Positions 13,677 to 62,837 of a stretch of DNA of 64,000 nucleotides are shown one piece after another. Below the pieces are notes generated by a model. The model saw only the letters and a program-made list of their open reading frames with translations. It was not told the origin of the DNA and made no database searches. Numbering within the stretch: position 1 is the first letter of the stretch; each line of letters opens with the position of its first letter. Made by a program: the position numbers and the translations under genes. Origin of the DNA: Macrostomum lignano (lineage: Eukaryota). The stretch lies in the NCBI GenBank assembly GCA_002269645.1, contig NIVC01002305.1, positions 121,340 through 185,339 of the forward strand, read 5' to 3'.

Positions 13677-13708
<32 letters not shown>

Positions 13709-15318: not shown

Positions 15319-15386
15319 TTGAGTACGGCCGGGACTCAAGAGATGTCAATGTTGGGATGAATTTTTATTATTTTTTATCTCCATTA

Positions 15387-15567
15387 GGGCCATAGACAAT
15401 ATGAGCATTGATCTGGTGTGGATTTCCATCCGTCAAATTGACTGCTCCACACAACCTCTTTTTTCGGCCATAGACAATAAAAAGCAAGTGTTTAATAGTT
15501 TGAATCTTCCAACTAAGGATTAAAAATAGCAGTTTGTTTCATTCAATACTAAAATAGTCTATGGTCC
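15387..15567. mobile_element. Putative 181-bp MITE just downstream of the HID1 stop codon.
   Basis: TA|GGGCCATAGACAAT ... ATAGTCTATGGTCC|TA forms an imperfect 14-bp inverted repeat with TA on both sides. CCATAGAC/GTCTATGG also recurs at 36745, 53855-53878 and 54340-54440. Confidence 0.45.
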
Positions 15568-16624
15568 TAACTCCTTGGCCATAGAAATTTATTTTGTAAT
15601 CCGTTAAATCTGTCAGTTAGTCTGCCCAAAAACATTGGACTGATTTTTCATTTTATTGAGTGAGTCTACTTTAAGTAGCTTTGAAAGGGGTATTTTTCTA
15701 ATTAATGGGTCAGGACGCATAAGATTATTAATTAGTGCATGCGTTGGTTGTCTTCAATCTTTTTTAATATCCGCTATTATTGATAATTAAAATGAGTTAT
15801 TGATTTTTGTTTTTTGGCTTCTCTAACGTTGGTTTTAAAGGCTTTAAAATTCAATAAATTCTGATTGCTGATAAGCCTGTCTTGTGTTTTACCTTCAAAA
15901 TTAATTATCCTTGTTTATGCTACTAATTTACAAAGTACATAGTGTCACTGATTGGCGTGTTATTAAAAAAATTCAACTAATTAAAACAGATTGTTAATCA
16001 GTGTTTTCGTCATATTTTAAGCGTTGTTAGCTAAAATAATTATATTTGCCTACTTCCACGTGTTGTACTAATATTTGTTTTAGTTATTAACTGTACTTAC
16101 AATCTTCATAAATTCTGTCACTAGTAAGTAAAGCTCTGTAAAATATGTAATTGAATTTTTGTTAAACTTGTGGGTCACAAAATTATAAATCTTATTTAAA
16201 ATTTTCGTATTCTCCGTGACACTGCTTTATTTAAATATATTTTGTTTTAATCAAACTATTATTTACACTTGGACATATGCATATATGACACATGTAATAC
16301 TAGTGCACTTTGGGTACTTGGAATATTAATTTATGAGCATGAGTCCATGACTAGAGCCCTTTTTAATGGCGTTAAAAATACTTTATAGACGATTTAGATA
16401 GTGATAAAATATTGTGTTGTCTCTGGCATAATTTTATTCTAAAGTGTAATTATAACATTTTTTGTTTGAAACTTCTCTATTAGTTAATAAACTACGTTTT
16501 CTTGATATTTTGCTTAAAACTTTTTTTTGTTCCTGAATAAGAATTTTGAATTTATATTTACAAATTGTAGAGAATTACTCTTTTGGTGGCAGTGAAATGT
16601 TATTTAGATTTACACACTTATATA

Positions 16625-33342: not shown

Positions 33343-35147
33343 CTACACAGTGGTATCGCCGCCAAATTCTTCGTGCGCTTTCAAAGGTCGCGAGCTCGCG
33401 CCGTAGCCGCGATGCTCGCCGGCGTAGCGACGGAAGCCGCTGTCAACGCCGGCGCCGACGCTGGCATTGGCGGGCGCGGCACCGTGGCTCAGATGACTGG
33501 ACGCGGTGATTGACATCGGGAAATTGTACTGCTCATCGTCCAGCCTCACCGCGTCGGCCAGCTGCTGGCTGAACAGCACTATTATAGCGAAGCCGGTGAA
33601 GAAAGTGGCCAGGCAGGAGAGACCGAACGACCAGGATGGCCAGTTCAAGGATGGGATCGGCATCCAGTAGGGATCGTTGTGTTTGAATGCGAATATGATG
33701 TTGGCGATGATTAGACAGCAGACTGCGGGACAGGATTGACATGGATGAGCTGCTGGTAGACTTTTATTAGGTACATGGAGTACTTAGAAGGCTGGTGGGT
33801 GGCCCCAGAAACTGATTATCTGGGAGGCTGGCCCAGCAACTGATTATCTGAGAGGCTGGCCTAGCAACTGACACTCTGGAAGGCTGGCTCAGCAACTGAC
33901 ACTCTGGGAGGCTGGCCTAGCAACTGAGGATCTGGGAGGCTGGCCTAGCAACTGAGGATCTGGGAGGCTGGCCCAGCAACTGAGGATCTGGGAGGCTGGC
34001 CTAGCTACTGGGGATCTGGGAGGCTGGCCCAGCAACTGAGTATCTGGGAGAGTTTAGCAAAGAAAATCAGTAAGAAAAGGTGCAAGACTTACAGATAAAA
34101 ATGTTGATGTAGTACAGCACCCGAGACAGCAGGACCCTCTGCTGCACATGGGTGATGACATCGCAGGTGTAGACAAGCATTAGGATTACATTGGCCAGGC
34201 CAATTAGGAATGCCAAGGTTACAAACAACTGAATGAATCGAAACCAAGCTAAAAAGTGTTGCACAGGGAGTGGGTTCTTGTTTTTATGATTCAGAGCATT
34301 TGGAAGGCAAGATAAGGAGATATTATAAAATATTAACAAATCATTTTGGTATATTTATAAAAAATGTTAAAGTTATATACCATAAAGTATGGCTTTTCAA
34401 ATTTAGTTTACCTACATTTTATGAAAAAAATAATATAAAAGCAAAATAAGAAAACTATTAATAAGCTATGTTACTTGCAAATTATTTTCCGAATTGAAAA
34501 TATTTTGGAATTTTTTTATGACTTTTATCTAAGCACTTGTCTTATATTTTAGGTTTCAAGTTTTAAACACTAATAATAATAAGTTAATAATTGATGGAAA
34601 ATCCCAGTTTATATAGTTCAATTGTAATTAATTCAATTATTATACTATTTCAAATAGGCAATCAATCTGTGATTGAAAGGATTTTATTGGTAGGCAGATC
34701 TATAGTCAGGCATAACAATATGCATATACATATATCACATAAATTTATGGTACGGCATTGTACAGAACTTCTAAAAATTGTATTAACGGTCTCTTGTGCA
34801 TAAAAAAGGATTTTATTGCAGCAGAAACATTACTTACGAGGAGTTAGTACATTCCGAATAGGATCATAATATGGAGCGAATATCCACCAGCATCCATAAA
34901 ATGACTGCACATTTTCATCCCGTCTGTGTACATAGCCGTCCATGCAGAATTCCCATAGTCCGAGTTTATCAAATGGGGTGTGAATACGCGACCAAGAGAC
35001 GAGCCAGTAAGGAGAAACAAAAGAAATTAGAACTGAAATGAATGATACAATACTGAAAACTGTCGCAACAACCTTCTTTTGAAAAAATCTCCTTGACATC
35101 CTCGCGGACTTCCCATTTTGCTGTTGGTATGGCTGATACTGGTTCAT
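33343..35147 (-). CDS. Invertebrate claudin (PMP22/claudin superfamily; megatrachea/sinuous/kune-kune-like). Exons 35147-34838, 34248-34093, 33722-33343. 281 aa.
   Basis: The claudin ECL1 signature is present: SPYWLVSW...KLGLWEFC...GCWW. There are four hydrophobic segments and the WMPIPSLNWPSWSFGL motif typical of insect septate-junction claudins. GT-AG introns are both phase 1 and sum to 846 nt. The C-terminus DTTV* fits a class I PDZ-binding motif. Confidence 0.9.
33800..34052 (-). repeat. Inverted copy of the 28-bp family in claudin intron 2.
   Basis: AACTGAGGATCTGGGAGGCTGGCC(C/T)AGC, about 8 copies. Confidence 0.9.
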
Positions 35148-37800: not shown

Positions 37801-38679
37801 TGGACAAGCTGGATGTGAGGTGGGTGTCCTGAAATGAATGGAGGCAGAATATACAGAATCAAAGGACACAGAATTTGGCACTACATATTTTTCTATATCT
37901 CAGTTGTCTAGCTTGATTCGCGCTACAAGTCACTAAAAGCAGCTCAGGAAACAGAAAAATTACAATACGGAACAGGTAAATCACAGCAATAAGCGAACCT
38001 TCCATTGTTTCTTACATCAAAAGGGGATGCTTTTGAGTCCGCACGGGTAAATTGATTGCAGCTTAAAAATAGATTAAGTCTAGATATAGATGGAATATGG
38101 ATTCAGGTAATTATTTAGCGCAGCGACTGTTACATGCATGAAATCACAGTGCCTTGCTGGTAGACCCGCAGCCAAGGATAAAAAAGCAATTTTTTGACTG
38201 CATTTTTTTCGACTGTCAAAAACGTTTCCTCCTCTGAAGGCCTGATCAGCAACAAAGGTCGGCTGGCAATTTGAGATTGAATGAGAGAGATAGGCAGGGA
38301 GCAAGGCAGATCAGTTGAGCCCTGAGCAGAATGAAGAGAGTACTGTATACCGTAGATGCCGACGAATGCACAAGGGTTATGGGTGATGGGATCTGCTCCA
38401 TGCGCTGCGATTGGATGAATTCTATAGCTATATAACTTGGGATTTTTACCTGCAATTTGCTGAGGCTTCCATAGGCGTATTGCAGAAATAAACCAACGTT
38501 TAATTTTCAACCATTCGGCTTCTGAAGTGAATTTGAGATATTTCAAGCCAGGGGTAAGTAGTGTCGTTTTTTCGACAATATTGATACTGCTGATATGAAT
38601 TACTATTTCAGATAAAATTAAATGATCTGGGTTAGACTGACAGACGCGGAGTAGGTCAGGGTGTGATAAGGAGAGTCCC

Positions 38680-44049: not shown

Positions 44050-44650
44050 GGGTTATGGATGACGTCACTCTCTAAAATTGGAGGATCGGTGGTTTATGGA
44101 TGACGTCACTCTCTAAAATTAGAGGATATGTGGTTTATGGATGACGTCACTCTCTAAAATGGGGGTGGTTAATGGATGACGTCACTCTCTAAAATTGGAG
44201 GATCGGTGGTTTATGGAGTCTACTCATAAACCACCGATATGGAATCTACCCATAAACTACCCATAAACCACCGATCTACCCATAAACCAAATTATGGATG
44301 ACGTCACTCTCTAAAATTAGAGGATCTGTGGTTTATGGATGACGTCACTCTCTAAAATGGGGGTGGTTTATGGATGACGTCACTCTAAAATTGGAGGATC
44401 GGTGGTTTATGGAGTCTACTCATAAACCACCGATATGGAATCTACCCATAAACTACCCATAAACCACCGATCTACCCATAAACCAAATTATGGATGACGT
44501 CACTCTCTAAAATTAGAGGATCTGTGGTTTATGGATGACGTCACTCTCTAAAATGGGGGTGGTTTATGGATGACGTCACTCTAAAATTGGAGGATCGGTG
44601 GTTTATGGATGACGTCGCTCTCTAAAATTGGGGGTGGTCTATGGATGACG
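44050..44650 (+). repeat. About 38-41-bp composite repeat GGTTTATGGATGACGTCACTCTCTAAAAT.. with internal hairpins. Contains many TGACGTCA palindromes.
   Basis: About 10 TGACGTCA in the array, plus two more at about 44722 and 44765. Confidence 0.9.
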
Positions 44651-44779
44651 TTACTTTGTATAAACTGAAAACAGCGTTGCGAATGATTTCACTCTTGCCT
44701 AGTTAGAGAAAGAGGTTGGAGATGACGTCAAAATCTCTATAAATTTGCGGAGGGCAATTGCAGATGACGTCACAGTCTC

Positions 44780-45979
44780 TCAAATGCTCATGGCGCTGCC
44801 CCAGACGGCGCTGCAGCCAGCTACGCAGTACACAAACCAGATGAGCACAAGTCCCAATCCGCAGGCTAGTAGTGGCCAGAGGATGCAGTGAAACACCTGA
44901 CCTTGACTGAACTCTCTGCCTCTCAATGCCGAATATTCTTCCCAGCCGTTAATTGACTCCTTGCGAACGTAGCATTGGAAGCCATTGCCGTCGCTGTACA
45001 TTGTGGCGTTGAGATTCGCGATCTGGCGGGCATTGAGCAGCTTGTCCTTGTAGCAGATTCTGGATACGCACTGGAAAAAAGAAAAAAGGAAGTGAAAAAA
45101 AAGCTATTAAAGCGCGCTAATTTAGACGGTATTCGCGACAGCGCTCACTGTTCTCGTTAAAATATCCAATAAATTGATTATATAATATATAATATAATTT
45201 ATAATTTATAAAATATAATATAATATAATATTTAAAAAAACAAGCATGATAGTAAAGATAAAAAAGTATTTTCATAATGAAACTTAAATTCTTTGAAAAA
45301 ATGATCGGAAAGGCAATATTTTCTATCTTGAAATTTATACTCTTAAAATTACCTAAATGAAAGGCAACGATAATTTTATTAAAATGAGTTAAAAAGTATA
45401 AAGCGTCGTACAGTCTTTGTTGTCTTATCATTAGGCTATGTATTATTATTACTATTATTATTAGCAAAATTGCTGGGTTCAATTCTAGATACACTTTTCC
45501 AGGAAAACTTTTGAACAAAAAAAGTAGCATTAAAACAAAATATTGCATCAAAACAAAAAACGTGTTCAAACCTTAGCTGGCAGGGTAGCCTCTGCATAGT
45601 AGGTATACATGAGATAGATTGTGGCAACACCAGCATCAGCGAATCCGCTCGAAGTTCCATTGAAGGTGACTCGAACTGTCAAACACGGAAAACTCGATGG
45701 GTCTCTGGAGAACACGTCCTGACAGAACTGATCTCCGGTGTAATAACTCGATTGGAATTCGCACACTGCAGCCTTGAATTTGTGCTCATTTAAATAGGGC
45801 CCAATGATGATGCCCAGGCAGATCATTTCAACTACGAAGCCGAGAGTGAACAGGGTGCCACCGAGTAGGTACAGCCACCTGCCGGCGCCCAGAACGATGC
45901 ACAACCGATCGCACCGACCGCCCTCTGCTGCTCCTCCAGTTGAACGCCGATTTCCTGTCGAGCTTCGATTCTTTGCCAT
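44780..45979 (-). CDS. BK-channel beta-subunit-like protein A (KCNMB/CaKB-TipE family, 2 TM). Exons 45979-45572 and 45070-44780. 232 aa.
   Basis: TM1 ends ..IIIGPY. The Cys-rich loop contains SSFPCLTVRVTFNGT, K|CVSRIC and FQCY. TM2 is preceded by R.FSQGQVFHCILWP. This mirrors the KCNMB pattern YPCL.V.V / CSY.P.C / F.C / LFWP. The phase-0 intron has AAG|GTTTGA and polypyrimidine-CAG|TGC. Confidence 0.82.
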
Positions 45980-46129
45980 GGTTTTAGCCTAGTTTATGGC
46001 TCGATTACTCTTGGGAGAGATCGGCTACTGAAAGTATAAGTACAGGCTTGCTACTATATAAATTTGTCACTTTGGTAAAAAGTCACCATAACAGGTTCAG
46101 ACCCTCCTGTTGAATCGTGAACCTATGGT

Positions 46130-46885
46130 TCTACCCATTGAGTCGTGAACTTGGGGGTTCTACCCCTCTGTCGAGTCGTGAACTTGGGGGTTCTACCCCT
46201 CTGTCGAGTCGTGAACTTGGGGGTTCTACCCCTCTGTCGAGTCGTGAACTTGGGGGTTCTACCCCTCTGTCGAGTCGTGAACTTGGGGGTTCTACCCCTC
46301 CTGTCGAGTCGTGAACTTGGGGGTTCTACCCCTCTGTCGAGTCGTGAACTTGGGGGTTCTACCCCTCTGTCGAGTCGTGAACTTGGGGATTCTACCCCTC
46401 CTGTCGAGTCGTGAACTTGGGGATTCTACCCCTCTGTCGAGTCGTGAACTTGGGGGTTCTACCCCTCTGTCGAGTCGTGAACTTGGGGGTTCTACCCCTC
46501 TGTCGAGTCGTGAACTTGGGGATTCTACCCCTCCTGTCGAGTCGTGAACTTGGGGGTTCTACCCCTCCTGTCGAGTCGTGAACTTGGGGATTCTACCCCT
46601 CCTGTCGAGTCGTGAACTTGGGGGCTCTACCTCTTCTATTGAGTCGTAGACTTAGGGTTCTACCCCTTCTATTGAGTCGTAGACTTAGGGTTCTACCCCT
46701 TCTATTGAGTCGTAGACTTAGGGTTCTACCCCTTCTATTGAGTCGTAGACTGAGGGTTCTACCCCTTCTATTGAGTCGTAGACTTAGGGTTCTACCCCTT
46801 CTATTGAGTCGTAGACGGGGTTCTACCCCTTCTATTGAGTCGTAGACGGGGTTCTACCCCTCCTATTGAATCGTGAACTTGGGGG
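46130..46885 (+). repeat. 33-bp minisatellite AGTCGTGAACTTGGGGGTTCTACCCCTCTGTCG, probably inside a 5'-UTR intron of gene A.
   Basis: Period 33 measured at 46141/46174. On the minus strand there is a strong donor CG|GTAAGT at 47054 and an acceptor CTAG| at 45989, 9 nt before the ATG. Confidence 0.9.
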
Positions 46886-47405
46886 TTCCAGCCCTCCCAT
46901 TGGGCTAGTTCCTACGGGTCCAGTTGAGCCGTGATCCTGAGTTCCTACCTGTCATCGAATCGTATATAGGGTTCCCAGTCGTATGATCATGACGAGTTGG
47001 AATATAGCTAACATGCAGGCAAGATATTAGAATCGATCATTTAGCTTCACTTACCGTTTTGTCCTGCTCTCTAAATAGAATCCCGTGCTTTAATTGTTAA
47101 TCCATCTGAGTATGCAAAATCCGTTTTAAAAAAACGTAGCTACTCTTAGAGAATAAAATAACGTTCAAGGCAAAGGAGGCAGAGAGAGAGCCAGAGTTGA
47201 ACACGCGTTGGTTGGTACAGCCCTTGTTAAACCTACTCAAGCCTTATAAATCCGATAGCTAGACCACGGAGCCATGGCTGCACCCATTTGCTCACAGAAA
47301 ACCCTCCCTCTCTCTGTCCCTCTCTAAATCCCAATTGGGATCTTAGGGAGAAGGGAAAACACCGCACAAATAATGCATAGGCCTGAGGGGCATTTTTCTT
47401 ATTCT

Positions 47406-47407
<2 letters not shown>

Positions 47408-47468
<61 letters not shown>
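47408..47468 (+). repeat. (CT)n microsatellite. Similar tracts occur at 42630-42668 and, as (GA)n, at 58108-58141.
   Basis: Directly visible. Confidence 0.95.
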
Positions 47469-47473
<5 letters not shown>

Positions 47474-47788
47474 AGTGCGGTTTGTTCGAGAGCTGTAATA
47501 GAGCTGGAATCAGCGGCATGCAATGGCCGGTCAGAAACCTGACACCATAATACGAGTTGAAAATGCGTAGTTCTCTACATGTAACTCAGCTTTGTCCATG
47601 CAGAGCTGCATGCCCTGAGCCAAGTGTTGGAACTTGGACATTTTTTTACTATCAAATTGGCACAGTTAAAGCAGCTATTGCAATTCATTTTCAACCCAAG
47701 TGGCAAAATGCCAAATCAAGTTGTAAATTGTTAATTCAGAGCTACCAAAAGGCCAAGACGTGTGCATCATTCATAGTCATTTCAAGTA

Positions 47789-48802
47789 CGAGGGGTGTTC
47801 GGAAAATTCGGACGCTTTTAATCCCAGACCAAAAACAGTAGCAGCTGCAAGCACAACTTTGGTGTCATTTAAAAGCGGCACATCCTTTTCAATGAATTCA
47901 GTCGCGTGTATTTTGGTCATTTCTGTCAAAATTTACGTGAGAAAAACCATAGCAATGCCATTATTCGATTATATCACTGCCACTAATCCACTAATCCATA
48001 TGATCGATTACGGATTATCGATCGATTATTGATCACCGATTATGGATTATCGATCGATTATTGATCACCGATTATGGATTATCGATCGATTATTGATCAC
48101 CGATTATGGATTATCGATCGATTATTTATCACCGATTATGGATTATCGATCGATTATTGATCACCGATTATGTATTATCGATCGATTATTGATCACCGAT
48201 TATGGATTATCGATCGATTATTGATCACCGATTATGGAGTATCGATCGATTATTGATCACCCATTATGGAGTATCGATCGATTATTGATCACCGATTATG
48301 GAGTATCGATCGATTATTGATCACCGATTATGGAGTATCGATCGATTATTGATCACCGATTATGGAGTATCGATCGATTATTGATCACCGATTATGGATT
48401 ATCGATCGATTATTGATCACCGATTATGGATTATCGATCGATTATTGATCACCGATTATGGAGTATCGATCGATTATTGATCACCGATTATGGAGTATCG
48501 ATCGATTATTGATCACCACCGACTATCTCTGATTATTGACACCATCGTGAGCGTGATGAATGACTAAAATTCATTTTTGAGGACATCGCTTTTTATATAT
48601 TTTAAACTTTTACAAACATTTACAGACATACATTGCGATGGTTTTTTCACGTAACTTTTGAAAGAAATGACCAAATTACACTCGAATGAATTCATGGGAA
48701 AAATATGTGCCGCTTTAAAATGACACCAAAGTTGTGCTTGCAGCTGCTATACTGTTTTTGCTCTGGGATTAAAAGTGTCAGAACTTTCCCCGACACCCCT
48801 CG
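47789..48802. mobile_element. Tc1/mariner-type non-autonomous element (MITE) with about 170-bp imperfect TIRs and a TA target duplication.
   Basis: The left end TA|CGAGGGGTGTTCGGAAAATTCGGACGCTTTTAATCCCAGA...GCAGCTGCAAGCACAACTTTGGTGTCATTT matches the reverse complement of the right end ...TCTGGGATTAAAAGTGTCAGAACTTTCCCCGACACCCCTCG|TA. No transposase ORF is present. Confidence 0.88.
48000..48520 (+). repeat. 32-bp GATC-rich minisatellite CCGATTATGGATTATCGATCGATTATTGATCA inside the MITE.
   Basis: Period 32 measured at 48031/48063/48095. Confidence 0.95.
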
Positions 48803-49249
48803 TATAGAAGACTCACTCGTTTCTGTGCAGTTTCTCTTGTGCCCAGCTGCTCCGCCAAATGCAAGTTGGTTCGGCCTTTTGTATCCATGGTCGCTATTGC
48901 GCAACAGTTGCGCAACAGAAGCGCTCTGATTGGCTAATCTGCAGATCAACTGAATTTTATGCACTTTTGAGTTGGCTATTGTGCTACTTGACAGGAAAAA
49001 AACAGACGACGCAATCTACGCCACGCCCGCGTTGCTCATCTTAACTGTGGGTGGGGACAATTCGCGTCACAAAGTCCTAGTTTAGTCTGGTGAGGAGAGA
49101 GCAGCTGAAAGTTATGAGTAGGGTTGGATTAAAGCTGCCACCTGTTGAAATGTATTATGACGATGACATGCAAATATCATTGAAAAGCTACCCTGTAACC
49201 ATTTCAGGTTTTGCTCTGCACCCCATTGACTAAAACAGCGCTAACGGAC

Positions 49250-50787
49250 ATGGCTCTTCGCCGCTGTCACCGCCTCTGCAATGTGATCGGCATAGCCAAA
49301 TACGTTTTTCTTACCTGTGTATCACTAATCACCTGCGGAGTCATAGTTGGCGGTATCCTAGCTTATTTAATCATTCTGCCGTACTACCGAGAGGCGCGAT
49401 TCGAGCAGACCAGCTGCGTGTACCTTGGCGAAGAGATGAAGCGTATTATTGACTGCGAAAGCAAGTGCGCCAAGGATAGAAGCAGCTATCCCTGCTACAT
49501 GGTCAGGGTCAACATCTCGGGCGTGCCTGAGCAAGGTGTACTGTTTGAAAATTTTCTCACTTATCTGGAGCAAGATAAGGTAACTTTGTTGAAGAAACTG
49601 CACTGTTCAGTTTCTGTTCCTGAAATTGTGAAACATCTAATCTTTGAAAAAATGATATATTCATCAGAGTTGCCTAACGTGTAGGATCCTCTTTTGTTTC
49701 TGTATGAACCTTATTCAAAATTAAACAAATCTCCGACGAAAAATAAAATACAGGTTAGGTCAGAGAAAAACCTTAAAATCTCTGACCCCCTGTGTAGTGC
49801 GTACACTCACGAATGTACATCTATTTAACACCAAAGCAAAGCCAATTAACCACCCCCCGGAAATCACTGACGCAGTGACGCTCCATTCTGGGCCAGACCT
49901 GAAAACAATTCTTACCCCCCTGCTGCGCCTCCGCCCCCCTCAATTGAAGAAATGTTTAATGTACATCTAAATATAGGTGGAGAGATACCCACTATTTCTC
50001 GGACCGCATGTGTACACTCACGAATGTACATCTAGTCAACGCCATAGAAGTCACTGGCGCTCCAATCTGGGCCAGGCCTGAAAACAATTCTTACCCCCTG
50101 CTGCGCCTCCGCCCCCCCCCCACGAAAGTCACTGGCGCTCCAATCTGGGCCAGGCCTGAAAACAATTCTTACCCCTGCTGCGCCTCCCCTCCCACGAAAG
50201 TCACTGGCGCTCCAATCTGGGCCAGGCCTGAAAACAATTCTTACCCCTGCTGCGCCTCCCCTCCCACGAAAGTCACTGGCGCTCCAATCTGGGCCAGGCC
50301 TGAAAACAATTCTTACCCCCTGCTGCTGAGAGTGATCCCAACTCTCTAACGGCAGTGTACACTAACAAATGTACATTTAGAAAAGGGGCAAAGGCGAAAC
50401 CAAACCAATTACCCCAGCAAACTCTAACCCCCTACGTACACTCATTCTAGTCTAAAACAATTATAACCCCCGGCTGCGCCTCCACCGCCCTTCCAGACAA
50501 ACTGCAGCTCGGCGCCCTGCCTACCCGAGGCGGTAGAAAACGTGGAAATGACCCAGCGCTACATTAAAACCCTGCGACGTCGCCGCAATTTCACCTGCTA
50601 TTTTCGCGGCCCAGACTCTCGCCAGAAGAACTCGGTGCTGCTCACTAAGATCTACACAAAAGAGCAGGCTAAGCACTGCGCCATCTGGCCAGCATTTGCC
50701 GTCTCAATTGGCGCCATTGTGCTCATCGGAACTCACTACTGCGCTGGGTGCACCGTGTGGACTCAAGATAAAACTGTTATTGCCTGA
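49250..50787 (+). CDS. BK-channel beta-subunit-like protein B. Exons 49250-49579 and 50497-50787. 206 aa.
   Basis: MALRRCHRLC...TM1...LPYYREARFEQTSC...CESKCAKDRSSYPCYMVRVNIS...QDK|TNCSSAPC...FTCY...KIYTKEQAKHCAIWPAFAVSIGAIVLIGTHYCAGCTVW. Donor AAG|GTAACT, acceptor TTCCAG|ACA, phase 0. Confidence 0.82.
49790..50340 (+). repeat. About 64-bp tandem repeat GAAAGTCACTGGCGCTCCAATCTGGGCCAGGCCTGAAAACAATTCTTACCCC.. in the gene B intron.
   Basis: Four near-perfect copies at 50047-50320 and a degenerate copy near 49860. Confidence 0.88.
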
Positions 50788-51105
50788 TCGATGCATAGCA
50801 TCTTGATCAGACTGATCGACACTCAATCAATGAACAAGAACAGAAAAAACAGAAGCACTAGCTATGCATGATGCTGTTGTCATTTTCTCTATTTTCTCGA
50901 AAAATTATTTCATACATTTTACATTTTACAGCAAGAAAATTATCGGCTTAAAAGCGCACAAAAATTTGGTTTTCAATAACGAAACGCACCGTCATACTTA
51001 CATTGATTTAAAGACTTCTTCTAAGATATTAAACCAATTTGCTTAAATTCTGATAGAATAGCTAAAACATGATCTCTGTTCCTGACAGTAGTATTATGAG
51101 CATTT

Positions 51106-52850
51106 GACGATCAGACCGACGCTCGATGCCACCTCGACCAGCCTGTCGATCTGGCGCTGGGCGCCTTCAACGGACGAGGACAGGAGGGCGAGGTCGTCGG
51201 CGTAGCCAAGCACGCTCAGGCGCTTTTCGCCGTGTCGGCGACCGATGCGTCTGCGCAGCAGGAAGCCGTCATTAGCCGAGGGGAGTGCGGTCCGAAGCAC
51301 CCAGTCCAGCAGCAGCACGAAGAGGAACGGCGCTAGCGTGTCGCCCTGCAGAACTCCTGATGAAGTATCGAACAGGTCAGACAGGCCGTCCGCCGTCACC
51401 ACAGCAGCTCGAGTATTGCAATACAGCGCCATGACTGCGTCGATTAGCTGCTGGGGTACCCGGTAGGCTCGAAGGACAAAGGGAAGTGCGGCTCTCAACA
51501 CCGAGTCAAACGCCTTTCGAAAGTCAACGAAGACAATGATCAGCGTAGACTGGCGGATGCGCGCCTCCTCGATGACCCGGCAGAGTGCGAGGATCTGTGT
51601 CACTGTACCGCGTGTTGCGGCCGGAATCCGTTCTGCTCGTACCGCAGGTACGGGTCCAGCACCGACTGCAGACGATCGAGCAGCAGCCGGTTGAAGAGCT
51701 TCGCGGTGCAGGACATCAGCGAGATCCCGCGGTGGTCTTCTTTCCGCGTTGTCCCTGCCTTCTTCGGGATCGGCACGATGTGCGCGACGGTCCACTCGGT
51801 TAGGCGCAGGAGCGCCAGCGAGCACGTGGTTCATGACGCCTGTGACCTGGGAGGGCACACAGCGGAGCCGCAGCGCTTCGACCGGGACTTCGTCGGGGCC
51901 GAGCGCCTTGCCGCCTGATGTTTTCCGAGCGAACAGCACAACGTTCTCCTTGGTGACTGGTCTGGTGCAGAAGTCCTCCTCAGCTGGGAGCGGCGTGTCC
52001 AGTGGGAGCGCAAAGCTGGCGGGCAGCGGCGACGCGGGCGCGTTCACGATGCCGGCGAAGAAGTCGCGCAATTCATTCCTGCGCTCCTCCGGGGTGTCGC
52101 CGGCCAGGTTCAGCGCCACGCGCTTTTTGCGCCCGTCAGAGTCCGGACGGCCGTCCATACTGCGCGGCTCTTCACGTCGGGGCCGGCTGCAGTGATGGAC
52201 CTAATGGCGTCGTTGACAGCGGCCTGCTGCCGCTCGTCAAGAAGGCGCTCAAATGCGTCTTCAGCGTCGCCTGTGGGCCTCCGGTTTCTGCGGAGTCGCT
52301 CGATGTTGAGCCGCGCCTGCCTGATGATGGGGTCGCTCTGCCAGACAGGCAGCGATTTCTGCGCTGGTCGCATCAGCGGGACCGTCTGCTCTGCAGCGGC
52401 TCTAACGGCGGTGCTGATGTCGGAATACTCCACCTCGCGCTGGTATCCAAGCGCGCCGACGAAGGCACCCGCGAATTGACGCTTCACGCGGGTGTCCAAC
52501 AGTGCGCGATAGTAGCGCCGTGGCCGCTGCTTTGGCGGTCGGTAGAGCTGGTCGCGGAGCCGCAAGTCGCAGATCAGGAGTCGGTGGTCTGACCGGAGAG
52601 CCAGCGGAGCCATGGTGTCGCAGTTGGTGACGCGGCGGCGCTCGCGAGTGCGAACCAGCGCATGATCGAGTTGCGCCAGTCTCCTCGTGGCATTCCGCCC
52701 GCGTGCGTTCCGCCGCCTTCTCTTGCAGCCCGCAAAGGTGACCAGGCGGGCAGGGGGCTTGCGGAACTGGGTGTTCGCGGACACCAGATCCAGCCGGTCA
52801 AGCAGGTCCTCCAGCGCATCGGTATTGGCGTCCTCAAGCGCAACATGCAC
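51106..52850 (-). pseudogene. Inverted 5' segment of the LINE ORF (endonuclease C-terminus plus RT core), with frameshifts near 52140, 51800 and 51615.
   Basis: The alternative frame between about 51800 and 51615 restores TEWTVAHIVPIPKKAG...DHRGISLMSCTAKLFNRLLLDRLQ..LDPYLRYEQNGFRP, the conserved RT domains 1-2. Confidence 0.88.
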
Positions 52851-53465
52851 AGGTGCTGACTGTGCCGGCCGACATCCCAGCGGACCTGACGTGCCGCGGC
52901 GCAGACTGGCAGACGACCAAGCTCGCACGCTGCCAGCGGTTCACCTACCTCGGCGGTCTGGTGCCCCACGTGGAGGAAGACCTCCGGCGGCGCAGGGGAT
53001 TCGCCTGGGCGGCCTTTCGTTCGATCCGAGCCGTCCTCCAGTCTGAAGCGCTGCCCGACCGCCAGAGGGCTCGGCTGTGGCAGGCGGTGGTCGAAACCGT
53101 CCTGCTCTACAACGCCGAGACGTGGACGCTGACGGCTACGCTAGAGCGCTAGACGCTAGACGTTACGCTAGAGCGGCAGCTGGACTCGGCGCACTCAGGA
53201 CTGCTCCGTGCGGCCTTTCGAGCTGACGAGAGCGTCGGGACCGAGGCCCTGTACGATCGGGCCAAGCTGCAGCGCCCGTCCACCATCCTGCGCCGGTGGC
53301 GACTTCAACTGGCGGGCCACGTGATCCGGGCCGAGGGCTACTGCCCCCAACCTGTTCAGGACGTCCTGCTGCTCACCTTGCAGGGTCCGTTCAGGCGGGG
53401 TCTGGCCCGAACCCGTCGATACGTGGACTGCCTGCTGTGCGACGCTGGGGCGCCCCGACACTGAC
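52851..53465 (+). pseudogene. Sense 3' segment of the LINE ORF (end of RT and thumb region), interrupted by a short ACGCTAGA(G) duplication at about 53140-53175.
   Basis: Translation gives FTYLGG..RRRRGFAWAAF..LYNAETWTLTATLER[dup]QLDSAHSGLLRAAF...RRWRLQLAGHVIRA. Confidence 0.85.
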
Positions 53466-54715
53466 TTCGTTCGCTCCCAGGCTCTGCGGCGCGCCATCTG
53501 ACGCGCCCTGCCCTAACTGTGACTTTGCATGCGGGTTGCGTATTTTGTTGTTGTTGTTGTTTTTGAGCATTTATTGCAATAATCAACCTTTTTATAACAA
53601 AACGAGAGAAACATGTAGGCAAATAACTGAGTGTATTTTACACAAAAATAAATTTAAGTGTCTTGACGGCATTAAATTCCATAATAAACCAATATGAATA
53701 GAGTGCAAAGGGCTGAAAATGATCTGAAAATGTTAAGACGCGTAGCTGCCTGAGCAGCCAATTAATATAAATTACCAGTTTTTAATTTTATTTAAGAATC
53801 CGAGCATTCATTTCAAGACAATGCCAATCATATTCAACAATATTTCTACTCTTGTCTATGGTCAAAACAGTCTATGGCACAGGCACGACAAAGCATTGAA
53901 TTTAAGACATAGAGCAGTCAAATTCAGACAAGTGCCGCCAATGGAGCTGGAGAGTCCTCCAGACGGATACCATCTACAGAATTGGAGTTCCCTTGGTGCT
54001 GCAGAGAATCGCGGAGTCAGGCGTGGATGTCATCCCGGTTGTCATGAGGGCACCCTGGTTAGCTCACGCACTGCGCTTCCTGACCAGCTGCTTGGCCCAT
54101 GAAAATATCTGATTGAGCACACATGTGGCCTGACAGTTTAGTCACAGTCGCTATAAAATATGTGCATCACAAAATGCCAATTCACTTTATCACTTGTTCG
54201 ACTTCTGCGTCACAAATTACGCATTTTTTGTCTAAAGGCTCCGAGTTTTAATGTCTGAACCATACATCTTATATACATATGATCTATGGTCTGAACTCAA
54301 CTGGTTAATGTCTTAAATACTCTCCCCATACACGGTTTTAGCCATAGACAATCGTGGAAGTGTGGCTTGAATATGGTTAGTCCTAGCCGTGTCTTATATT
54401 CAATGGATCTCCCCATACACGGTAATGGCCATAGACTATCGTGGAAGCGGTGGGTTGAATATGGCCGTGTCTTAAATTGAATTCTTACCCAATACACGGT
54501 TTCGCCCATTGACATTCTCAGCGGGCGGTCTGTCTGCTGTGCGTTCCAGCTTCGACATATTCAGGCATAGCAACCTAACACGCATTGAATGCATGCAACA
54601 TGTATGGAATTAAGCTTTTGTCGTAATACCAAAGATCAGAATTATCTCTATATGACCAAATCCAAAGGTCTAATATAAATGAGCAATCTACTCAACTCGT
54701 AGTTCTACTGGCTAT

Positions 54716-55812
54716 TCAGGCAATAACAGTTTTATCCTTAGTCCAAACGGTGCACCCAGCGCAGTAGTGAGTTCCGATGAGCACGATGGCGCCAATTGAG
54801 ACAGCAAATGCTGGCCAGATGGCGCAGTGCTTAGCCTGCTCTTTTGTGTAGATCTTAGTGAGCAGCACCGATCTCTTGGAGTCAGTGTTGTCGTCACCTC
54901 GATAATAGCAGGTGAAGTTTCTTCTACGCCTCAGGGTGCGAATGTAGCGCTGGGTCATCTCTACGTTCTCCGTTGGCTCTGGCAGACAGGGCGAGGAACT
55001 GCAGCCCTCCTGATTGGGGCGGAGTTGAGGGGTAGGAAAATTCAAATGACCTGAATGTACATTTAGGGGTAGAGGGAGGCCAGAAGTGTACAGTAAGGGT
55101 TTGAAATAGCTCATATGTACAGCGAAAGGCAGAGATCGAGAGACCGATGATGCGCAGTGAAGTTTGGAAAGGGAATGTATGTACATTTGGAAAGAATGAT
55201 GATGTACAGTGAAGGGCAGAAGGGAATGTACATAGATTAAGGGCAGGGAGACGCACCGTGATGTGCTTCATTGAAGAGGGTGTTTCTGTTCATTCGGAGG
55301 AAGGTTTTTAGAAAGATAGTGACCTGAGTATGTACAACAGTTGCTCTTTTACCTTGGGGTTGCGATAGGGGCCTCGCGGCCTATTCGCGGCGCCTGCGCC
55401 CCCCGTCAGTAGTAAGTAAGTAAGTATGTACAACAGTTTGGCTGAAATTATTCGTTTGTACACACACCTCGTACACGTCGGAAAACGTCAAGTAGTTCTC
55501 AAACAGAGTTCCAGCTGTTGACAGACCAGACACGTTGACCCGAACAACGTAGCATGGGAATCTGCACTTCTCCTTCTTGCACAAGTAGCCATAGCTTTCC
55601 CGTTGGTTGCGCATGCAATAGTGCAAATCTTCGCCAAGATATTCGCAGCTGGTCGGTTGAAATTGCGACTCGCGATAGTACGGCAATATGATGAGATAGG
55701 CAAGGATGCTGGACACTATTAAACCGCAGGCGATCAACGATACGCAGGTGAGGAATACAATCTTTGCCAAGCCGATGACGTTGCAAAGTTTGTGGCATCT
55801 GCGTAAAGCCAT
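54716..55812 (-). CDS. BK-channel beta-subunit-like protein C (close paralog of B). Exons 55812-55468 and 55009-54716. 212 aa.
   Basis: MALRRCHKLC...LPYYRESQFQPTSC...CRFPCYVVRVNVS...DVYE|EGCSSSPC...FTCY. The C-terminal 45 aa are nearly identical to gene B (SVLLTKIYTKEQAKHCAIWPAFAVSIGAIVLIGTHYCAGCTVWT.DKTVIA*). The phase-0 intron is at the same position. Confidence 0.82.
55343..55422 (+). mobile_element. 80-bp severely 5'-truncated retro-insertion: GC-rich 3' end plus (TAAG)n tail, with a 16-bp TSD, in the intron of BK-beta-like gene C.
   Basis: AGTATGTACAACAGTT occurs at 55327-55342 and again at 55423-55438. It flanks GCTC...GGGGCCTCGCGG...GCGCCCCCCGTCAGTAGTAAGTAAGTA. Confidence 0.75.
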
Positions 55813-56039
55813 GACGAAGCACTTAAAGAGAATCTTTGTTTAGAGCGCTGTTCTCGTGTGGACTTGCTTTATACTATTTGAATATGCATTGTGCGAACAT
55901 GGTTGGCTGGCTGGCAAATGGAAGCCTTCAGCTGGGCCCAGTCTGCTGCATTGCGGCATTGAGATTTACATTTCTGGCGGGGCGATTCTGAAGCCAGTCT
56001 GATATTGGTGGCCATTTTTGGCTGTATATTTAGGGCGAG

Positions 56040-57050
56040 GCGATTCTTGGGGGGTTGATTTGGGGTGATTCTTGAGGGGTTGATTTGGGGCGATTCTTGA
56101 GGGGTGGATTTGGGGCGATTCTTGAGGGGTGGATTTGGGGTGATTCTTGAGGGGTTGATTTGGGGCGATTCTTGAGGGGTAGATTTGGGGTGATTCTTGA
56201 GGGGTTGATTTGGGGCGATTCTTGAGGGGTGGATTTGGGGCGATTCTTGAGGGGTGGATTTGGGGTGATTCTTGAGGGGTTGATTTGGGGCGATTCTTGA
56301 GGGGTGGATTTGGGGCGATTCTTGAGGGGTGGATTTGGGGCGATTCTTGAGGGGTGGATTTGGGGCGATTCTTGAGGAGTAGATTTGGGGCGATTCTTGA
56401 GGGGTGGATTTGGGGCGATTCTTGAGGGGTAGATTTGGGGCGATTCTTGAGGGGTGGATTTGGGGCGATTCTTGAGGAGTAGATTTGGGGCGATTCTTGA
56501 GGGGTGGATTTGGGGCGATTCTTGAGGAGTAGATTTGGGGCGATTCTTGAGGGGTGGATTTGGGGCGATTCTTGAAGGGTTGATTTGGGGCGATTCTTGA
56601 GGGGTGGATTTGGGGCGATTCTTGAGGGGTTGATTTGGGGGGGGGTGATTCTTGAGGGGTAGATTTGGGGGGGGGTGATTCTTGAGGGGTAGATTTGGGG
56701 GGGGTGATTCTTGAGGGGTTGATTTGGGGGGGTGATTCTTGAGGGGTTGATTTGGGGGGGGGGGTGATTCTTGAGGGGTTGATTTGGGGGGGTGATTCTT
56801 GAGGGGTTGATTTGGGGCGATTCTTGAGGGGTAGATTTGGGATTGATTCTTGAGGGGTTGATTTGGGGCGATTCTTGAGGGGTTGATTTGGGGCGATTCT
56901 TGAGAGGTTGATTTGGGGCGATTCTTGAGAGGTTGATTTGGGGTGATTCTTGAGGGGTTGATTTGGGGCGATTCTTGAGGGGTTGATTTGGGGCGATTCC
57001 TGATGGGTGATTTGGGGCAATTCGGGATGGGCAGATTTGGGGCGATTCTT
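56040..57050 (-). repeat. 25-bp minisatellite (plus strand GGGGTGGATTTGGGGCGATTCTTGA). Its reverse complement carries CAAGAATCGCCC, as in HID1 intron 3.
   Basis: About 40 copies with GGGG runs. Confidence 0.95.
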
Positions 57051-60277: not shown

Positions 60278-62837
60278 TTGTTGCGACAGAAGCAGATCCA
60301 GTTGGCTCGGATCGTCAATTTGTCCAACAGGAACTTCGTTCACCATATTATAGGGATCAGACCCGTGCGACCGTTGCATTCGCCGTGGTAAAATCCGTCT
60401 TCATCTCGGTCGCCCCACACCTTCATCAGCTGACCTTCCTGCGGTGGGGAAAGGAAATGGAAGAAAAAAATTGAGGAAAATCTCACATTGATCACCCCCT
60501 GAGTCACTGCCATTCCCTCCTTGATCCTCCACTGAGTCACCGCCATTCCCTCCTTGATCCTCCACTGAGTCACTGCCATTCCCTCCTTGATCCTCCACTG
60601 AGTCACCGCCATTCCCTCCTTGATCCTCCACTGAGTCACCGCCATTCCCTCCTTGATCCTCCGCTGAGTCACCGCCATTCCCTCCTTGATCCCGACACCC
60701 ACAGCCCTTGAGCACACCCCAGCACAGCGAATTCAACCAACCTTAAACGGCAACTCCTCTTGAATGGCATCCGGGTTCGGGCTCATTGTGGCGGGATCAT
60801 AGTCGAATAGGGCAACAAAAATCCTGGATATCCCGGATGGAGCAGCTCGCTGTTGCTGCTGCGGTTGCTGCTGCTGTTGCATATGCGGCTGCTGCTGCGG
60901 CTGCTCAGGCTCCGGCATTTCAAATGACGACTCCTGCTGCTGACTGGGATGCCGCCTTTGCCGGCCTGCTCGATCCCTGCTCCCAGCTTGATGATGATGG
61001 TGCTGCTGCTGCTGCTGCTGCTGAGGCGGCGCCGGCGGAGGCGGAGGCGGCGGCGAGTCAGACCGGTGGCCACTTTGTCGGCGACTTCGCGATCCTCCGC
61101 CTCCGCCGCCGCCGCCTGCCGCCGCCGATGACTGCCTGGCCTGATGCCGGCCGTGATGGTACGGCTCGCCTCGCCTGCCACCGTAGTGCCGGTCCCGCTG
61201 CTGCTGGTAGCGGTCCCGGTCCCGATCCCGATCCCGGTCCCGATCCCGTCCCGATCCCGGTCCCGATCCCGGTCCCGATCCCGATCCCAGCCGGAGCCGC
61301 GACCGCCGCGTCTGCCGCTGTCGTAGGGATGCGTGACGTCATCGCTGATGATCTCGTCCTCCTCGGGCATGTACTCCTCTTCGGCGTCGGAATAGGGCAG
61401 GTCCTCGTTGGTGACGTCTGGAGGGTTGGCAGTCAGTTCTATGCTTGAGCGATTTCCGATGCATATCGTTGCAATAAGCTTAGTGAAATAAGACAACTGG
61501 CACTCTGATCCTGGCTTCTGTCATATGACTCCATGTCCCTGTCATATGACTCCATGTCCCTGTCATATGACTCCATGTCCCTGTCATATGACTCCATGTC
61601 CCTGTCATTTGACTCCATGTCCCTGTCATTTGACTCCATGTCCCTGTCATTTGACTCCATGTCCCTGTCATATGACTCCATGTCCCTGTCATATGACTCC
61701 ATGTCCCTGTCATTTGACTCCATGTCCCTGTCATTTGACTCCATGTTCCTGTCATATGACTTCATATGATCTCCTTAATCCCTGTCACTCTCATCTCACT
61801 AATCCCTTACACTCTGATCTCCTTAATCCTTGTCACTTTCATCTCACTCATCCCTGTCACTCTCATCTCACTAATCCCTGTCACACTCATCTCACTAATC
61901 CCTGTCACACTGATCTCACTAATCCCTGTCACTCTGATCTCACTAATTCCTGTCACTCTGATCTCCTTAACCCTTGTCACTCTGTTCTCACTAATCCCTG
62001 TCACTCTGATCTCACTAATCCCTGTCACTCTGATCTCCCTAATCCCTGTCACTCTGATCTCACTAATCGCTGTCACACTGATCTCCCTAATCCCTGTCAC
62101 ACTGATCTCCCTAATCCCTGTCACTCTGATCTCACTAATCCCTGTCACACTGATCTCCCTAATCCCTGTCACTCTGACTCCCTAATCCCTGTCACTCTGA
62201 TCTCCCTAATCCCTATCACTCTGATCTCCCTAATCCCTGCCACTCTGATCTCACTAATCCCTGTCACTCTGATCTCCCTAATCCCTGTCACACTGATCTC
62301 CCTAATCCCTGTCACTCTGATCTCCCTAATCCCTGTCACTCTGACTCCCTAATCCCTGTCACTCTGACTCCCTAATCCCTGTCACTCTGATCTCCCTAAT
62401 CCCTGTCACTCTGACTCCCTAATCCCTGTCACTCTGACTCCCTAATCCCTGTCACTCTGATCTCCTTAATCCCTGTCACTCTGATCTCACTAATCCCTGT
62501 CACTCTGATCTCCCTAATCCCTGTCACTCTGATCTCCCTAATCCCTGTCACTCTGATCTCACTAATCCCTGTCACTCTGATCTCACTAATCCCTGTCACT
62601 CTGATCTCCCTAATCCCTGTCACTCTGACTCCCTAATCCCTGTCAGTCTGACTCCCTAATCCCTGTCACTCTGTACCTCTGTCCCTGTACCCGCCCTGTC
62701 ACTCTGTCCCTGTACCCGCCCGAAAGACAAGAGAAAGAAAGCAAGAACTCACGAATTTCAGGTACAGAAACATTCTTTGACAGCCGTTTGTGACCTTGTC
62801 TGTAGGCTCTGTAATCTTCTGTAGGCGATTTGCCAAC
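59962..62837 (-). CDS. RIMBP2: RIMS-binding protein (RIM-BP), 3' part. Exons 62837-62753 (less certain), 61417-60742 and 60438-59962. Encodes SH3 domains 2 and 3. The 5' part lies beyond the window. Three apparent 1-bp frameshifts.
   Basis: SH3-2 reads [28 protein letters not shown]|[29 protein letters not shown](Y)NMV. SH3-3 reads [40 protein letters not shown]...[12 protein letters not shown]. These match the RIM-BP family SH3 consensus. Splice phases are consistent (0/1/0) once the indels are corrected. The symbol is a family-level assignment. Confidence 0.9.
60497..60692 (+). repeat. 33-bp minisatellite GAGTCACCGCCATTCCCTCCTTGATCCTCCACT (6 copies) in the last RIM-BP intron.
   Basis: Each unit junction forms TGAGTCA. 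Confidence 0.93.
61520..62720 (+). repeat. Two adjacent minisatellites in a RIM-BP intron: 21-bp CCCTGTCAT(A/T)TGACTCCATGT (61520-61765) and about 24-bp CCCTGTCACTCTGATCTC(A/C)CTAAT (61775-62720).
   Basis: Directly visible. Both share CCCTGTCA. Confidence 0.95.

Follow-up and report, generated by a model that had tools for sequence, protein, structure and literature searches.

A stretch of 64,000 nucleotides from the flatworm Macrostomum lignano (100% identical to contig NIVC01002305.1 of assembly GCA_002269645.1; the whole stretch is hereafter called the window) holds three genes, A, B and C, within 11 kb, and their products almost certainly belong to the KCNMB family, i.e., the BK channel beta subunits that Pfam gathers under the name CaKB. 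All three are two-transmembrane proteins of 206-232 residues, each made from two coding exons with intact open reading frames (ORFs). What do such proteins do in a flatworm? BK beta subunits are still handled as a vertebrate topic in the physiological literature. By analogy with the vertebrate subunits, we consider it fairly probable that A-C act as auxiliary subunits of the Slo1 (BK) channel of this animal. They are new members of a known family, and the cluster is real but fairly ordinary, so that the gains are modest: two paralogues, A and C, that appear unannotated, a nested and inverted layout, and what is most simply read as a gene-conversion tract over the second transmembrane helix (TM2) and the tail.

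Gene models and family assignment

An earlier reading of the window, made from the sequence only, had put three such genes at 44780-55812, and the models below fill exactly this span (positions are those of the window; a caret marks a splice boundary).

45979-45572, minus strand: gene A, coding exon 1, with the N-terminus, the first transmembrane helix (TM1) and the first half of the loop including FPCLTVRV; donor AAG^GTTTGA
45070-44780, minus strand: gene A, coding exon 2, with CVSRIC, FQCY, TM2, CVAGCSAVW and the stop codon; acceptor TTCCAG^TGC, phase 0
38464-38553, plus strand: gene B, upstream 5' exon, from the annotated transcript; donor GGG^GTAAGT, joined to acceptor TTTCAG^G at 49208
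49208-49579, plus strand: gene B, start-codon exon, with ATG at 49250, TM1 and the first half of the loop including YPCYMVRV; donor AAG^GTAACT
50497-50787, plus strand: gene B, last exon, with CSSAPC, FTCY, TM2, CAGCTVW, ...TVIA and the stop codon; acceptor TTCCAG^ACA, phase 0
55812-55468, minus strand: gene C, coding exon 1, with FPCYVVRV; preferred donor GAG^GTGTGT, weaker alternative donor at 55477
55009-54716, minus strand: gene C, coding exon 2, with CSSSPC, FTCY, TM2, CAGCTVW, ...TVIA and the stop codon; acceptor AATCAG^GAG, phase 0

The introns within the coding regions are GT-AG and phase 0 in 3/3 genes, and the predicted proteins have 232 (A), 206 (B) and 212 (C) residues. The ORF of gene A begins at the first ATG following a stop codon, and the ATG starts of A and C sit in a ...C/ATGG context. 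It is to be noted that the donor site of gene C is not certain: the one at 55468 is preferred over that at 55477 because it fits the consensus better, and use of the latter would give a protein of 209 residues. For gene B, the spliced prediction is 100% identical over the full length to the NCBI model BOX15_Mlig013936g3, and its intron is therefore independently supported. Two exons per gene, as had been proposed, is right for the coding parts; the annotated transcript of B adds the exon at 38464-38553, to which the first 30 residues of P0001 map, so that the annotated gene has three exons, the acceptor at 49208 lying 42 nt ahead of the ATG. This upstream exon is probably a 5' untranslated region, translated solely since the NCBI coding sequence is 'partial', because P0003 and P0004, two paralogues, have their start at this MAL[RK]RC too. 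Its position places gene A, on the opposite strand, inside the 10.7-kb first intron of B. All the motifs listed in the sequence-only reading ([FY]PC..VRV, C.S..C, F.CY, WP and C(V)AGC..VW) are found in A-C, the WP standing within a TM2-entry motif ILWP or AIWP in all three genes; so are the N-glycosylation sites (two to three N-x-S/T sequons in each loop) and the loop cysteines, which number six in A, seven in B and eight in C as stated there. A tblastn search with the A, B and C proteins gave no fourth copy in the window.

What places these proteins in the KCNMB family? The profile, the fold, the cysteine pattern and the intron position agree with one another, and on these grounds the BK-beta homology suggested earlier stands. 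The CaKB profile (PF03185; length 195; gathering cut-off 25.1 bits) matches A with 45.9 bits (E-value 6.8e-12), B with 68.9 bits (6e-19) and C, scored as its 209-residue variant, with 59.5 bits (4.6e-16), all above the gathering cut-off and over profile positions 12-15 to 180-185, and no other Pfam family was reported in A-C at E<=10. Since E-values of 7e-12 to 6e-19 come from three genes within 11 kb, the cluster is not a product of chance. When the proteins were compared with the Protein Data Bank (PDB) by phmmer, the only significant matches were KCNMB4 chains (6v22_E, 6.4e-12), in an alignment running from TM1 to TM2. AlphaFold2 models of A and B, built from cross-phylum alignments, reached a pLDDT of 92.5 and a pTM of 0.81 for B, and 87.2 and 0.77 for A; they place helices at residues 15-48 and 165-193 of B and at 32-65 and 192-220 of A, with a beta-rich loop between them. 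Both models match the Slo1-bound beta4 chains: in Foldseek searches of the PDB, the ten best matches (10/10) were beta4 chains of human Slo1 (hSlo1) complexes, with E-values from 1e-13 to 3.5e-9 and TM-scores of 0.52-0.66. The best E-value was 1e-13 for B (6v22_E) and 1.1e-11 for A, and the next match after the beta4 chains had E>=0.017, so that at least seven orders of magnitude lie between them.

The cysteine pattern is equally regular. In a cross-phylum alignment of 31 sequences, from Nematostella to reptiles, four loop cysteines (C56, C82, C113 and C144 in B) are invariant in 31/31, likewise when A is the reference, and they presumably correspond to C53/C76/C103/C135 of human beta1, where such cysteines pair into two disulphides. 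The best-conserved parts are the transmembrane helices and the juxtamembrane residues, i.e., P-Y ending TM1 and W-P opening TM2. The likely membrane orientation of A-C is taken solely from the sequons and cysteines of the loop.

Intron position and distribution across animals

Exons were mapped on genomic loci of Nematostella, Tubulanus, Schistosoma and Anolis KCNMB1, and in all four, as well as in gene A, a phase-0 intron lies directly ahead of the third conserved cysteine. The junctions read RNPK^CFYVP in Anolis KCNMB1, SDEEE^CSVAPC in Nematostella, GTKN^CSFSRC in Tubulanus, KFLG^CATSAC in Schistosoma and LPAK^CVSRIC in gene A. In the Macrostomum B-type genes the intron is found two to three codons upstream of the cysteine, two in B (EQDK^TNCSS) and two in C (VYE^EGCSS); the earlier description, a phase-0 intron just before C-x-S-x-x-C, is thus correct for the phase in 3/3 genes and for the adjacency in A, but not for the adjacency in B and C. 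The phase-0 intron is thus an old feature of the KCNMB family as a whole. It is independent evidence for common descent and makes the common ancestry of CaKB genes, from Cnidaria to chordates, firm.

How widely is the family spread? An exhaustive search with a Macrostomum-only profile brought up 191 cluster representatives at E<=1e-3, and among the best 150 of these 191 relatives, 135 match CaKB. The wider family surfaced only in this way: word-indexed searches with B alone or with a four-sequence Macrostomum profile returned only Macrostomum proteins, and one with the cross-phylum alignment returned chiefly vertebrate beta1. The flatworm relatives include Trichobilharzia and the cestodes Taenia, Hymenolepis, Sparganum, Schistocephalus and Anoplocephala. 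Unnamed members come from the nemertean Tubulanus, the annelids Owenia, Capitella and Lamellibrachia and the priapulid Priapulus, and members that already carry a name from Ptychodera ("beta-4-like") and Branchiostoma ("KCNMB3" and "beta-2-like"). Bona fide CaKB genes extend from Cnidaria via Spiralia to chordates. The 2011 study of TipE set Slo-beta, as the vertebrate side, against TipE, as the invertebrate side (PMC3240667), and the sequence-only reading had likewise presumed novelty for an invertebrate cluster; this premise falls with the annelid, nemertean and priapulid members, and also with Simanov et al. (2012), who had listed KCNMB2 and KCNMA1 among the human homologues for the M. lignano transcriptome (PMC3447372). 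The literature matches on invertebrate or flatworm KCNMB were only the TipE paper, a review on Nav channels and this 2012 ion-channel list; the flatworm CaKB family is already in databases and, as far as these matches show, unstudied. The names under which databases list its proteins do not agree and are probably mistaken ('WSC domain-containing protein', 'Calcium channel, voltage-dependent, gamma subunit 3b', 'Glycoprotein', 'Anoctamin'; P0002, P0153, P0009/P0177), and P0002 resembles a mis-spliced version of gene B.

It might be asked whether these proteins act apart from ion channels altogether, e.g., as generic Cys-rich membrane glycoproteins in adhesion or trafficking that have kept the ancestral fold. 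No functional study of an invertebrate member was found, and the UniRef names of close paralogues point in various directions ('Transmembrane protein', 'WSC domain-containing protein', 'Calcium channel ... gamma subunit 3b'). However, the fold has no known non-channel member, and it is the transmembrane helices and juxtamembrane residues that are best conserved, which fits a partner within the membrane, so that we regard such a role as very improbable.

Linked and nested genes are found elsewhere in the family. On OW051991.1 of Nematostella vectensis, two CaKB genes are separated by about 10 kb (1-607 on the minus strand and 10001-11225 on the plus strand of the locus L006) with an inositol monophosphatase-family gene between them; linked CaKB paralogues are therefore not restricted to flatworms and occur in this cnidarian too. 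In Anolis carolinensis (CM069368.1, locus L007), KCNMB1 is nested within a gene for an EF-hand protein on the opposite strand, an arrangement that resembles human KCNMB1 in KCNIP1. Nesting recurs in the family, with A in the intron of B, KCNMB1 in Anolis and the TipE genes in a host intron.

Duplication, probable gene conversion and annotation of the cluster

A simple neighbour-joining tree (BLOSUM62, 200 bootstraps) collects the flatworm sequences in one clade (90% bootstrap) and joins A with its paralogue A' (P0005) at 100%, and B with C and B' (P0003) also at 100%. Its deep nodes are weak, the split of A-type and B-type relative to neodermatans having 52%. Sequence identity is 28% between A-type and B, 73-74% between B and C, 48% between A and A', and 56% between B and B'. 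At least five paralogue types are present in Macrostomum (A, A', B, C, B' and P0004), and they are clustered. On each of three further contigs, A' (BOX15_Mlig026658) is followed 3.9 kb downstream, on one strand, by B', whose protein is identical to UniProt A0A1I8G080 (P0003) and which is missing from the NCBI-called genes:

15235-16500 of locus L003 (NIVC01002654.1): gene B'
13503-14775 of locus L004 (NIVC01002729.1): gene B'
7238-8503 of locus L005 (NIVC01003352.1): gene B'

These loci share with the window an A-type gene beside a B-type gene, two coding exons in each and the same intron site; A and B of the window are head-to-head and have a third, inverted copy, C, beside them, whereas A' and B' stand in tandem. 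Thus, the neighbourhood of A-type and B-type genes predates a large-scale duplication in the M. lignano genome. In 3/3 of these contigs, the next gene, on the other strand, encodes 185 amino acids (aa) and has no Pfam match. In Schistosoma turkestanicum, the one CaKB gene at the locus examined has an intron of 32 kb and no family neighbour within +/-10 kb, and a tight CaKB cluster in Schistosoma was accordingly not seen over that distance. The cluster had been called lineage-specific, and the tree does put its duplications within flatworms or within Macrostomum, but clustering as such is shared with Nematostella, as described above.

B and C are duplicates arranged tail-to-tail, and their 3' ends form an inverted repeat of 162 nt with 96% identity that reaches the stop codons:

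50626-50787, plus strand: gene-conversion tract in B, covering the loop end, TM2 and the cytoplasmic tail
54716-54877, minus strand: gene-conversion tract in C, the partner of the former

The proportion of synonymous differences (pS) between B and C is saturated in exon 1 (0.76) and in the 5' part of exon 2 (0.71) but only 0.107 in the last 53 codons. The simplest reading is a recent gene conversion limited to the loop end, TM2 and tail, in a pair whose loop-coding parts are free to diverge.

Are all three genes at work? In the 32 kb of GenBank record NIVC01002305.1 whose annotation was examined, the only genes called are B and one Claudin_2-family gene, and an exact-sequence look-up in a collection of 15 billion proteins did not return the proteins of A and C; for these reasons A and C appear to be unannotated paralogues. 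The same two facts would also suit the idea that only B works and that A, C or both are duplicates now silent or in decay, as would the ambiguous donor site of C and the reverse-transcriptase fragment and satellite arrays around the genes. Against this, the ORFs of A and C are intact, with the ATG context given above and with GT-AG introns at the position typical of the family, and all the conserved Cys, Pro and Trp residues are kept in both. The ratio of nonsynonymous to synonymous change (dN/dS) between B and C is about 0.2 overall, although synonymous sites are saturated, and points to purifying selection on both genes. In addition, the AlphaFold2 model of A is confident, and A has a conserved paralogue, A', annotated on three contigs. 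Decay or silence of A or C is, in our view, unlikely.

As for the surroundings, a retrotransposon fragment lies between B and C (51094-52928, minus strand, GC content 55-60%); it has a 354-aa ORF (Pfam RVT_1, 8.9e-15) and an overlapping upstream 272-aa ORF without a Pfam match, and several long ORFs on both its strands are probably by-products of GC-richness. Tandem arrays are found at 44053-44655, just 3' of gene A (period 41/196 nt, with the palindrome TGACGTCA in each unit), at 46140-46896 (33 nt x23), at 48005-48517 (32 nt x16), at 50048-50326 inside the coding intron of gene B (72 nt x3.8) and at 56039-57050 (25 nt x39), and these five arrays yield spurious long repeat ORFs, e.g., at 55869-57020. 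The Claudin_2 (PF13903) gene encodes 281 aa at about 33343-35147 on the minus strand, with about 3.3 kb between it and the 5' exon of gene B downstream; Claudin_2 is a family of four-transmembrane proteins that also holds gamma-type auxiliary subunits of channels. An ORF at 13446-14171 (plus strand; Pfam Hid1, 1.5e-15) probably belongs, as one exon, to a HID1 homologue, and a proline-rich repeat ORF at 61525-62352 (plus strand; Cornifin, 2.4e-29) lies in a GC-rich repeat region and most likely matches through its low complexity.

Partner channel and comparison with known systems

How would A-C work as subunits of Slo1? In each protein, TM1 and TM2 would be joined by an extracellular loop of about 115-130 residues, glycosylated and disulphide-bonded, and both ends, the N-terminus and the tail, would be short and cytoplasmic. 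On the model of beta1-beta4, A-C would assemble 4:4 with the M. lignano Slo1 (KCNMA1) tetramer, as in 6V22, with TM1 and TM2 packing on the voltage-sensor domains and the four loops making a crown above the pore. A KCNMA1 homologue, which such a complex would need, is reported for M. lignano (PMC3447372). The effect might be a tuning of surface expression or trafficking, of gating kinetics, of apparent Ca2+ or voltage sensitivity and of the access of extracellular blockers, and the paralogues could supply differing BK properties to different cell types. N-type inactivation by A-C would not be expected. The inactivation domain PF09303 (KcnmB2_inactiv) has no match in A-C, whereas four vertebrate-type relatives in a parallel scan do match, and the N-termini are 16 residues long in B and C and a polar stretch of 30 residues in A; because they have no such domain and their N-termini are short or polar, A-C could not inactivate a channel by a ball mechanism. 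A beta2-like ball is thus rejected, in agreement with what had been noticed from the sequence. What the data show is the homology, the fold, the cysteine pattern, the intron position and, between B and C, the signals of purifying selection and gene conversion. The partnership with Slo1, its functional effects, the palmitoylation discussed next and the expression of A and C are what we infer from these data.

The cytoplasmic tail deserves attention. In the 31-sequence alignment, all spiralian members have G-C-x-[VI]-W after TM2. By the phmmer alignment, Cys192 of B lines up with the Cys of TICA in beta4, and Cys193 of beta4 is palmitoylated and is needed for exit from the endoplasmic reticulum (ER) and for raising the surface expression of the alpha subunit (PMC3642354). 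It is reasonable to suppose that the juxtamembrane Cys motif past TM2 is a candidate S-acylation site or lipid anchor. The hydrophobic C-termini (TVIA, MSI and DVIV) might, as a speculation, act as PDZ class II or ER-export signals.

Several points speak against Slo1 as the partner. Identity to the vertebrate betas is just 19-25%. The vertebrate betas of the 31-sequence alignment lack the flatworm and nemertean tail motif, GC-x-[VI]-W...[VI]-[AV], and therefore contacts on the cytoplasmic side may not be the same. GenBank record NIVC01002305.1 annotates no transcript for A or for C. No functional, interaction or co-expression study of an invertebrate CaKB was found, although this search was thin on subscription journals and is weak evidence. 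Finally, TipE/TEH proteins modulate Nav and have no effect on Slowpoke (PMC3240667), so that partner switching has occurred in the KCNMB/TipE superfamily.

Do A-C, then, serve another channel, such as Nav, Cav or another K+ channel, with a KCNMB fold, in the way that TipE/TEH serve Para? In favour of this, TipE/TEH, which are distantly homologous to KCNMB, act on Nav rather than on Slowpoke (PMC3240667, PMC6259924), the flatworm members form a divergent clade with a cytoplasmic tail motif of their own, and multiple paralogue types would allow partners to diversify. On the other hand, the TipE half of the KCNMB/TipE label first given to these genes is not supported: no TipE match was found in A-C at E<=10, in a search where HMMER filters drop most matches above about 0.1 and where there was no TipE positive control, and none of the 150 best relatives of the Macrostomum profile (0/150) matched TipE at E<=0.01, as against the 135 that match CaKB. 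With no profile match in A-C or in their relatives, TipE membership is rejected. A-C are also much nearer to KCNMB (human beta4 by phmmer, 6e-12) than TipE is, for TipE profiles reached KCNMB4 only at about 1e-5 (PMC3240667), and the entire TM1-loop-TM2 architecture superposes on Slo1-bound beta4. We give a partner other than Slo1 for all three proteins only a small chance.

Similarly small is the chance that the two types have parted company, the B-type serving Slo1 and the A-type Nav, Cav or another channel, or that they act through the spiralian-specific tail, where GC-x-VW...V-I-A might combine an S-acylation site with a signal for PDZ binding or ER export. If this were true, it would give the first functional view of a member from outside vertebrates and arthropods, and it would open to test which channels, K+ or Na+, were regulated by the common ancestor of KCNMB and TipE. 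M. lignano is experimentally tractable, with transgenesis and RNA interference. Its small set of paralogues could reveal the ancestral role of beta subunits, and flatworm BK complexes may matter for anthelmintic pharmacology.

Coming back to Slo1 auxiliary subunits as the favoured reading, how do A-C compare with systems already known? With insect TipE/TEH1-4, they have in common distant homology, two transmembrane helices, a Cys-rich loop and a gene cluster with intron nesting (PMC3240667), whereas the loops of A-C are of KCNMB length and have no EGF-like modules; since the Macrostomum duplications fall within flatworms, the two clusters arose independently. With the other flatworm CaKB proteins, including that of Schistosoma, they share the clade, two coding exons, the intron site and the C-terminal motif, at 25-31% identity to B. 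With vertebrate KCNMB1-4, they share the two-transmembrane topology, a loop of about 120 aa, the four invariant loop cysteines, the [FY]PC...V strand and the H-x-x-x-W-P entry to TM2. The differences are that A-C have two to four additional loop cysteines and two coding exons, where the vertebrate genes have three, and that their tails are of the spiralian type, with GC-x-[VI]-W and a hydrophobic C-terminus (TVIA, MSI), while vertebrate tails are basic. Unlike beta2 and beta3, they have no N-terminal ball. Among the structures of the PDB, the closest likeness is to beta4 of the hSlo1-beta4 complexes (6V22, 6V35), whose fold the models of A and B match at the TM-scores of 0.52-0.66 given above, and A-C also have a juxtamembrane Cys past TM2 like Cys193 of beta4.

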